Positions 2,414-2,672 of a stretch of DNA of 64,000 bases are shown here, in pieces. Made by a program: the position numbers and the translations under genes. The DNA is from Paramoeba atlantica. Taxonomy: Eukaryota > Protista > Discosea. The notes beneath the pieces are model-generated. The model was given only the letters and a program-made list of their open reading frames with translations, made no database searches and was not told the DNA's origin. Each line of letters opens with the position of its first letter. Position 1 is the first letter of the stretch. The stretch is from contig CDRNVI010000002.1 of the NCBI GenBank assembly GCA_977017575.1, positions 372,001-436,000 of the forward strand, written 5' to 3'.

Positions 2414-2589
2414 GTGTGTGTGTGTGTGTGTGTGTGTGTGTGTGTGTGTGTGTGTGTGTGTGTGTGTGTGTGTGTGTGTGTGTGTGTGTGTGTGTGTGTG
2501 TGTGTGTGTGTGTGTGTGTGTGTGTGTGTGTGTGTGTGTGTGTGTGTGTGTGTGTGTGTGTGTGTGTGTGTGTGTGTGTGTGTGTGTGT
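2414..2589. repeat. (GT)n microsatellite, 5' flank of retroelement 1
   Basis: Pure GT dinucleotide run. Confidence 0.99.
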
Positions 2590-2615
2590 AAAGATACAGT
2601 TTCTGTACCTTGTTG
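2589..2615 (+). other. 3' 27 nt of SL-like exon at 5' end of retroelement 1
   Basis: TAAAGATACAGTTTCTGTACCTTGTTG; identical to copies at 33010-33045 and 38144-38179; resembles the kinetoplastid SL 3' half ACAGTTTCTGTACTWTATTG; followed by a T tract, not a GT intron. Confidence 0.85.
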
Positions 2616-2672
2616 TTTTTTTTTTTTTTTGTACTACGTTGTACAGAATGTTATGCGTCTGTAGCCCCTAAT

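Follow-up and report, generated by a model that had tools for sequence, protein, structure and literature searches.

A piece of the host spliced leader at the 5' end of an R2-like retrotransposon in the Paramoeba atlantica assembly

Results and Discussion

Structure of the element

The window, which is the whole stretch of 64,000 nucleotides analysed here (contig CDRNVI010000002.1, positions 372,001 to 436,000, forward strand, assembly GCA_977017575.1), contained an intact R2-like retrotransposon of 4.69 kb at 2590-7277 on the plus strand, which sat within a (TG)n tract. The features of the element and its flanks are listed below, in which C12 and C15 are contigs with further copies and the subfamilies are those described in a later section. 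Junctions are marked with a slash throughout.

2414-2589, +, (GT)88 microsatellite, the upstream half of the element's tract (TRF and sequence)
2589-2615, +, spliced-leader (SL) relic, SL nt 12/13-38 (identity to the SL gene exon); T2589 is common to the repeat and the leader
2616-2630, +, T15 run (sequence); the C12 allele has T14 and the C15 copy has T10, and subfamily c lacks the run
2631-2672, +, rest of the 5' UTR with two short uORFs (sequence, subfamily comparison and folding)
2673-7178, +, single intact ORF of 1501 aa, ATG at 2673 (domain and structure matches)
7179-7277, +, 3' UTR, ending ...CACTATGATTAAATGA or ...TTAAATGA; poly(A) tail absent; identical end in the C15 copy
7278-7550, +, (TG)136, the downstream half of the tract (TRF); the C12 allele carries a 575-bp SL-headed SINE-like insert here
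7551-11212 (end approximate), +, 5'-truncated related copy of subfamily a, abutting (TG)n and ending ...CACTATGATAAAATTA, then (TA)n

From 5' to 3', the head of the element consisted of (GT)88, AAAGATACAGTTTCTGTACCTTGTTG (2590-2615), T15, and GTACTACGTTGTACAG... or GTACTACGTTGTACAGAATG..., followed by the ATG at 2673. The ORF contained six CKHxCx5CxHxCCKRH knuckles at about aa 154-510, an RT domain of the non-LTR type at aa 814-1074 (Pfam RVT_1, E = 8e-28), and a C-terminal CCHC motif with a PD...ExT...K restriction-like endonuclease (RLE) at aa about 1305-1486. Its C-terminus could be aligned with the R2 endonuclease (CPICx10HILTSC, RPD, ELT...K), and no Pfam match to an APE domain was present in the 1501 residues. 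In the comparison with the PDB, R2 proteins ranked at the top (E = 1e-34), with L1 ORF2p next. Classed by its domain architecture and PDB matches, the element is an R2-like, RLE-bearing non-LTR retrotransposon. The neighbouring copy at 7551-11212 had no leader because it is 5'-truncated.

The 84-nt 5' UTR folded as three small hairpins (z = -4.5), namely the SL hairpin within the relic (TACAG-TTT-CTGTA), a second hairpin, and a hairpin spanning the start codon. The last was formed by the block GCGTCTGTAGCCCCTAA or GCGTCTGTAGCCCCTAAYATGGCAAGCTCAGACG (2654-2690), which was almost invariant across three subfamilies that were otherwise 65-80% identical. No Rfam family matched the head of the element at E <= 10 (window 2350-3100) or its SINE-like partner, although Rfam can miss divergent ribozymes; this agreed with the sequence-only reading of the locus, which had supposed that the element has no ribozyme of its own. 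With no such match in either the LINE head or the SINE, and with a UTR of only 84 nt that is AU-rich, an HDV-like ribozyme head was rejected.

The host spliced leader and its genes

The host SL exon was AACTTTAACGATAAAGATACAGTTTCTGTACCTTGTTG (38 nt), followed directly on the 3' side by the intron start GTATGAGAAGC (loci L044/L045), which is the same as in trypanosomes. In the whole genome (45.7 Mb, 248 contigs), ...CCTTGTTG/GTATGAGAAGC was found at 38 places, and these are the SL RNA genes. Judged by these genes, the leader at the element is most probably the host's kinetoplastid-type spliced leader. The gene arrays had a repeat of about 2.56 kb on C97 and C107 and of 1.45 kb on C3, where the repeat also included a 5S rRNA gene on the opposite strand. 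The sequence-only reading had called for the SL RNA gene array to be located, and had named the presence of the same UTR after the SL in such an array as evidence against itself; the 38 intron-bearing genes, tandem and 5S-linked, lay away from the element, and all true SL genes continued into the GTATGAG intron. Interruption of SL genes of the CRE/SLACS type was not found, since the 5' halves of 35/35 SL genes continued past nt 11. Some SL genes were oddly spaced (C74 104-122 kb, C11 3.5-6.7 kb, C24 267 kb), where units measured 7.3 kb and not 2.6-2.7 kb and pairs of genes were separated by 297 bp, and two SINE-like heads were located inside the 7.3-kb SL units.

Window positions 2590-2615 corresponded to SL nt 13-38 and, if T2589 is counted, the 27 nt corresponded to nt 12-38. 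The relic ended at the exact exon end, lacked SL nt 1-11 or 1-12, and was not followed by GT in the window. The window sequence and the SL gene exon together confirmed that an SL piece joins the TG tract to the T15-containing UTR without a GT intron, as had been noticed from the sequence alone. The 13-nt SL core ACAGTTTCTGTAC, the conserved kinetoplastid core, occurred three times in the window against an expectation of 0.07. The other two sites, at 33010-33045 (+) and 38179-38144 (-), carried a longer version, CTTTAACGATAAAGATACAGTTTCTGTACCTTGTTG, each with a different UTR.

Copies of the family and insertion polymorphism

Eight 5' regions of the element family were present in the genome and the leader was on 8/8, but only two clearly independent young insertions could be recognized among them. 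A 7.3-kb alignment of the C12 copy with the window locus showed 99% identity, and 5 SNPs fell within the element. Given that its flanks are part of this alignment, C12 was rejected as an independent insertion and regarded as an allele or duplicate of the window locus. Its upstream junction differed, reading (TG)n TTTCT GATACAG...CCTTG T14, possibly owing to assembly error at the repeats. The downstream (TG)n of C12 held an extra SL-headed SINE-like element of 575 bp (L051 8770-9343, equivalent to window about 7308), which began (TG)n/AAAGATACAG, left the total TG length unchanged, and was missing from the window allele. Within this SINE, which started with GTAC, CCGGCAACGGGCAT...ATGCCCGTTGCCGG formed a long hairpin, and a unit of about 95 nt was duplicated. 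Its presence in the C12 allele and absence from the window indicated that SL-headed elements have been active recently.

Over 4.65 kb, 12 SNPs and a single 48-bp indel separated the sister copy on C15 from the window copy. Its empty allele, on C53, read ...CAGTTC(TG)~9 (followed by 2 bases that were not read and are AT in the filled allele) TGGATTTAGTACATACA/TCTACACG, and the filled allele read ...ACATACA/G TAAAGATACAG T TAAAGATACAG TAAAGATACAG TTTCTGTACCTTGTTG T10 GTACTACG ... TTAAATGA/TCTACACG. C15 is a true, recent, polymorphic insertion that did not duplicate its target, and a short TG tract lies 19 nt upstream of it. The head of this copy was a stutter, in which every unit ended at a leader base identical to that of the window copy. 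The idea that the element itself adds (TG)n as a tail was rejected, since the C12 SINE splits the tract with the total length kept (31 + 243 vs 273 nt), the 3' end of the C15 copy has no TG, and the empty allele already has the short (TG)n 19 nt upstream.

Two more distant subfamilies were compared. Subfamily c (C56/C31) was about 80-82% identical and had the head flank/AAAAGATACAG...TTG/TACTATG, with the boundary at nt 13 and no T-run. Subfamily a (C59/C26) was about 65% identical, and its leader, from nt 3 and with a CTT insertion, was followed by a T-rich UTR. The relic was base-perfect between subfamilies b and c, while the next 43 nt differed at 4 positions and the coding sequence was about 80% identical; it was nearly perfect in subfamily a. 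The base-perfect relic beside diverged neighbours, together with the nearly full leader of subfamily a, spoke against simple neutral inheritance and implied that the relic is under selection or is occasionally refreshed. Its conservation is equally compatible with selection and with renewal from the host leader.

Leader heads across the genome

The genome-wide count of SL-bearing copies, which had also been proposed with the sequence-only reading, gave 700 exact matches to the 23-nt SL 3' part in 45.7 Mb, with none for the reversed control, and 891 matches when up to 2 mismatches were allowed; the distinct loci are fewer than these counts because the assembly contains haplotigs. About 850 SL copies lay beyond the window relic and the SL genes, and they headed many retroelement families. 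The census of the leader copies was based on about 130 loci and on pattern listings.

At 75 non-redundant sites on contigs C1-C6, the start of the relic was bimodal, with one mode at nt 3 and a cluster at nt 10-14. Heads of the first mode began with CTTTAACG, except that those merging into an A-run upstream began at nt 1; the preceding base was variable, and poly(A) or partial leader pieces often lay upstream. This pattern fits RT template jumps from the capped leader end to a poly(A) tail. Such heads belonged to other RT lineages, for example the element at 38179(-), whose RT was only 23% identical to that of the R2-like element. Many heads (L005-L030 and L074-L133, C1-C6) directly followed poly(A) and a single variable base, which was T, C or G at a position occupied by A in the SL gene. 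Other C1-C6 heads were preceded by 3'-truncated leader pieces, and at L028 the leader hairpin was present upstream in reverse complement. These poly(A), partial and inverted pieces look like end-to-end template jumps and snap-back at a modified cap.

The cluster at nt 10-14 consisted mostly of a GTAC-headed SINE-like family, together with the window element. The SINE-like heads started at nt 8-14 in unrelated flanks (nt 11 in 5/10 sampled), and the parental flank was not carried over. The leader was present on 56/56 copies of one SINE subfamily, and neither AG nor non-leader sequence was found upstream among 8 LINE and 56 SINE heads. In a full-leader family, the leader was on 26/26 copies at three junction positions, none of which came after AG in the longer form. 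No leader-less master copy was found in these three families (LINE 8, SINE 56 and full-leader 26 copies), and SL intron sequence was absent from the junctions of all 75 sampled heads.

Tandem leaders were searched for genome-wide as an SL 3' end followed by a second SL 3' half within 14 nt. The search gave 18 sites, in 13 of which the second copy came right after an internal AG: 11/18 read ...TTG/TTTCTGTACCTTGTTG (after ACAG) and 2/18 read ...TTG/ATACAG... (after AAAG). One of the 18 headed a SINE-like copy (L066), and no tandem relict leader was present at the window copy or its relatives. Since tandem relics began exactly after internal AGs, transcripts of encoded leaders must have been trans-spliced at these AGs and then returned to DNA by reverse transcription. 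This signature was rare, accounting for 13 of about 850 heads. In the single-leader majority, the DNA junction was TTG/N without AG (TTG/T or TTG/G among the copies checked), and canonical splicing cannot remake such a junction from a leader-headed parent. Collapse of tandem leaders by RT slippage seems unlikely as the main route to a single leader for a 16-nt repeat.

Origin and inheritance of the leader

That the leader arrived by way of RNA, as the sequence-only reading had held, was borne out by its exon-only sequence, its junction at the exact exon end and its position outside the SL arrays, when the 38 real genes carry the intron. Only splicing separates the exon from the intron, and hence the ancestor of the family was, with high confidence, copied from trans-spliced RNA. 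The further proposal of that reading, that a newly trans-spliced mRNA was copied at full length into the window element, did not hold, because the leader starts at nt 12/13 and nt 1-11/12 are absent. Nor did regeneration of the 5' end by trans-splicing in each round: the junction is TTG/T without AG, no leader-less master was seen, the C15 insertion and subfamily c end at the same leader base, and SINE-like copies end at nt 8-14. What survived of the idea was that trans-splicing of encoded leaders does occur genome-wide, as the tandem relics after internal AGs attest, but not as the regenerator of the window 5' end. Taken together, the junction without AG, the lack of leader-less parents, the boundary at nt 11-13 in unrelated flanks, the lack of parental flank and the C15 stutter make inheritance the simplest explanation.

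The best reading overall, to which we give somewhat better than an even chance, is therefore an inherited leader fossil with a built-in trans-splice acceptor. The shortened leader would now be a heritable part of the element and would not be added afresh in each round. New copies would be made from RNA whose copied part starts at leader nt 11-13, whatever the flank, and not from freshly leader-capped mRNA. The pyrimidine-rich 3' half of the leader, T15 and the next AGs would act as a portable trans-splice acceptor, by which a read-through transcript of any kind could gain a fresh capped leader at internal AGs for translation, and the element would be expressed without a promoter of its own. 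The first AGs past the pyrimidine tract are at 2645-2646 and 2663-2664, both positions are conserved in the three subfamilies, and these two AGs are the predicted internal trans-splice acceptors. Among 58 non-redundant heads, the first 30 nt past the leader were 73% pyrimidine, against 50% upstream and 50% at +100, and the median distance from the leader to the first AG was 33.5 nt, compared with 12 in shuffles. A pyrimidine-rich stretch that excludes AG is the appearance of a kinetoplastid 3' splice region.

Several candidates can be named for what sets the 5' end at nt 11-13 under inheritance of the fossil. RT may stop at a trans-splicing branch-point A (nt 11-15 are A-rich and lie upstream of the pyrimidine tract); alternatively, cleavage may accompany polyadenylation upstream, the SL hairpin or a bound protein may shield the end, or an SL-specific nuclease may trim it. 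The coincidence of the relic start with the CZAR/SLACS insertion point bears on the last of these, as a lead and not as evidence. In a more specific form, which we hold to be quite unlikely, the 26-28-nt stump would be a domesticated portable 3' splice-site module, with nt 11-15 as the branch point and the pyrimidine-rich end plus the T-run as the polypyrimidine tract; the start at nt 11-13 would then result from RT halting at the branched nucleotide of a nuclear pre-mRNA or Y-branched intermediate, or from an endonuclease inherited from SL-gene-specific CRE-type ancestors, trimming its own cDNA at the ancestral nt 11/12. If so, the element would carry its own means of capping in a genome without gene promoters.

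Three other explanations were weighed against the inherited fossil. Fresh addition by the spliceosome, an unlikely option, would have trans-splicing at 2615/2616 free the element RNA from read-through in each round, with the copy as the cDNA of this RNA and the missing 11-12 nt due to R2-like RT or integration systematically failing on the cap-proximal part; the same boundary would indeed result if RT regularly stopped 11-12 nt before the end of a capped leader. The relic is perfectly conserved across diverged subfamilies, encoded leaders have been re-spliced at 11 SL/TTTCTGTACCTTGTTG and 2 SL/ATACAG... sites (one heading a SINE-like copy), and other retroelement lineages have the leader from nt 3 with a variable base ahead, as expected at a modified cap, all of which would suit such a process. 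However, the DNA junctions read TTG/T or TTG/G and not AG, so daughters could not regenerate by canonical splicing, and no leader-less master was found in the families searched. Moreover, no RT-stopping feature is known at SL nt 11-12, the other RTs of the genome read through this part, and the C15 stutter ended repeatedly at the same base.

The leader could instead be attached by the RT, which, on reaching the 5' end of uncapped element RNA, would jump to the 3' end of the free SL exon (the trans-splicing intermediate) or to another SL-bearing RNA and thus renew the head without AG. End-to-end template jumping is a known property of the R2 RT, and its signs were common here: poly(A) + 1 variable base + CTTTAACG junctions were frequent, partial leaders lay upstream of full ones, one leader was inverted by snap-back, and one family had three junction positions that, in the longer form, never came after AG. 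But the free SL exon is a rare intermediate, SL intron sequence occurred in no junction of the 75 sampled heads, and neither the tandem relics starting exactly after AG nor the stop of R2-like families at nt 11-13 would be explained, which makes this route improbable. An origin of the CRE/SLACS/CZAR type, in which the element has, or once had, its insertion site in an SL RNA gene and the leader piece represents target DNA, appears very improbable. The element does have the restriction-like endonuclease typical of that group, and its relic starts at nt 12/13 where CZAR and SLACS insert between SL nt 11 and 12 (PMC5814959). The leader half is, however, upstream of the element and not downstream, the exon end is not followed by an intron, and the relic travels with the element into new sites (C15; the C12 SINE). 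As an explanation at the DNA level, SL-gene targeting is ruled out by the (TG)n flanks and the 35/35 SL genes with uninterrupted 5' halves.

Comparison with known systems

The closest known process is the recycling of SL-tagged retrogenes in dinoflagellates, which are described as 'recycled' and as bearing a relict DinoSL (Slamovits & Keeling 2008, reviewed in PMC6050394 and PMC5585692). In both cases, genomic copies start with an intron-less leader outside the SL genes. Tandem relict leaders cut at an internal AG, which record repeated RNA to DNA cycles, were present at 13 sites of the present genome but not at the window copy or its relatives. The small number of tandem leaders in dinoflagellates has been found puzzling and has prompted the suggestion that a retroposed leader has a function of its own (PMC6050394); their scarcity is equally puzzling in the present genome. 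In contrast to dinoflagellates, the carriers here were autonomous and non-autonomous retrotransposons and not host genes, the host is of the kinetoplastid type with a 38-nt leader, and the R2-like families had a fixed stump of 26-28 nt.

The CRE clade (CRE1/2, SLACS, CZAR) resembles the window element in its kinetoplastid or kinetoplastid-type host, its RLE and its association with the SL. CRE elements are inserted within SL RNA genes and end in a poly(A) tail (PMC12278014), whereas the window element lay in (TG)n, had no A tail (in two independent copies), and carried a leader half without intron at its own 5' end. With R2 and other RLE elements, including microsatellite-specific lineages, it shared one ORF, N-terminal zinc knuckles, RT, a C-terminal CCHC and PD-(D/E)xK nuclease, the lack of poly(A), no or minimal target duplication, and copies in or beside a simple repeat. 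The 5' end of R2 is defined by an HDV-like ribozyme in the rRNA co-transcript; the head of the window element was instead a piece of host leader in which a ribozyme was not detected. Pr77 of the trypanosomatid LINEs L1Tc/ingi is an internal promoter and HDV-like ribozyme, and the transcripts are unspliced (PMC1874656, PMC3383444). Like Pr77, the leader head is a short conserved 5' module common to autonomous and non-autonomous partners that would solve the 5'-end problem without gene promoters, but it is made of host leader sequence and a pyrimidine tract, and its activity is putative.

In genomes of the kinetoplastid type, genes are transcribed in long polycistrons and each mRNA is capped by trans-splicing. 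Retrotransposons of trypanosomatids obtain a defined, capped 5' end either through the Pr77 promoter/ribozyme or by parasitizing SL genes. The element described here represents a third arrangement, in which host leader sequence forms the element's own head and adjoins a stretch with the appearance of a built-in splice acceptor. The literature searched contained no report of retrotransposons headed by a leader in kinetoplastids. The filled and empty alleles and the polymorphic SINE show that the system is active, so that the setting or renewal of the 5' end can be tested directly with RNA and insertion data.

Other leader-bearing units and minor features

The unit at 32997-33592 (+) of the window opened with A13 and a leader that began at nt 3 (33010-33045). 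Behind this leader came 7 nt of a second leader tail (CTTGTTG), then a UTR, and then an ORF of 181 aa in which Pfam recognized an LsmAD domain (E = 2.6e-5); the unit was cut short by the adjoining minus-strand element. A second copy of this UTR was located at L116 (C5), joined to the leader at another position; the unit is either a repeated SL-tagged retrocopy or ORF1 of an element. The adjoining element began at 38144-38200 (-) and extended to about 33700. Its full leader started from nt 3, with a partial leader, ATAACGATAAAGATACA, and 4 nt upstream, and its N-terminus (MGMFTRSRAKE) was a motif common to many leader-headed families. This element was degenerate, with an early stop and a split RT.

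At L001-L004 (C1 9.7-25 kb), a 5093-bp tandem repeat had the leader (from nt 2-3) between two copies of the 30-nt segment ttcttatttgtatttcgcacgaataaaagt, an arrangement that may be the circle junction of a recombinase-type retroelement. Finally, a 269-aa ORF at 38592-39398 (+) of the window gave a weak match, below the cut-off, to the Cas12f1-like TNB zinc-ribbon (PF07282, E = 4e-5) and may be a TnpB/Fanzor-like remnant.
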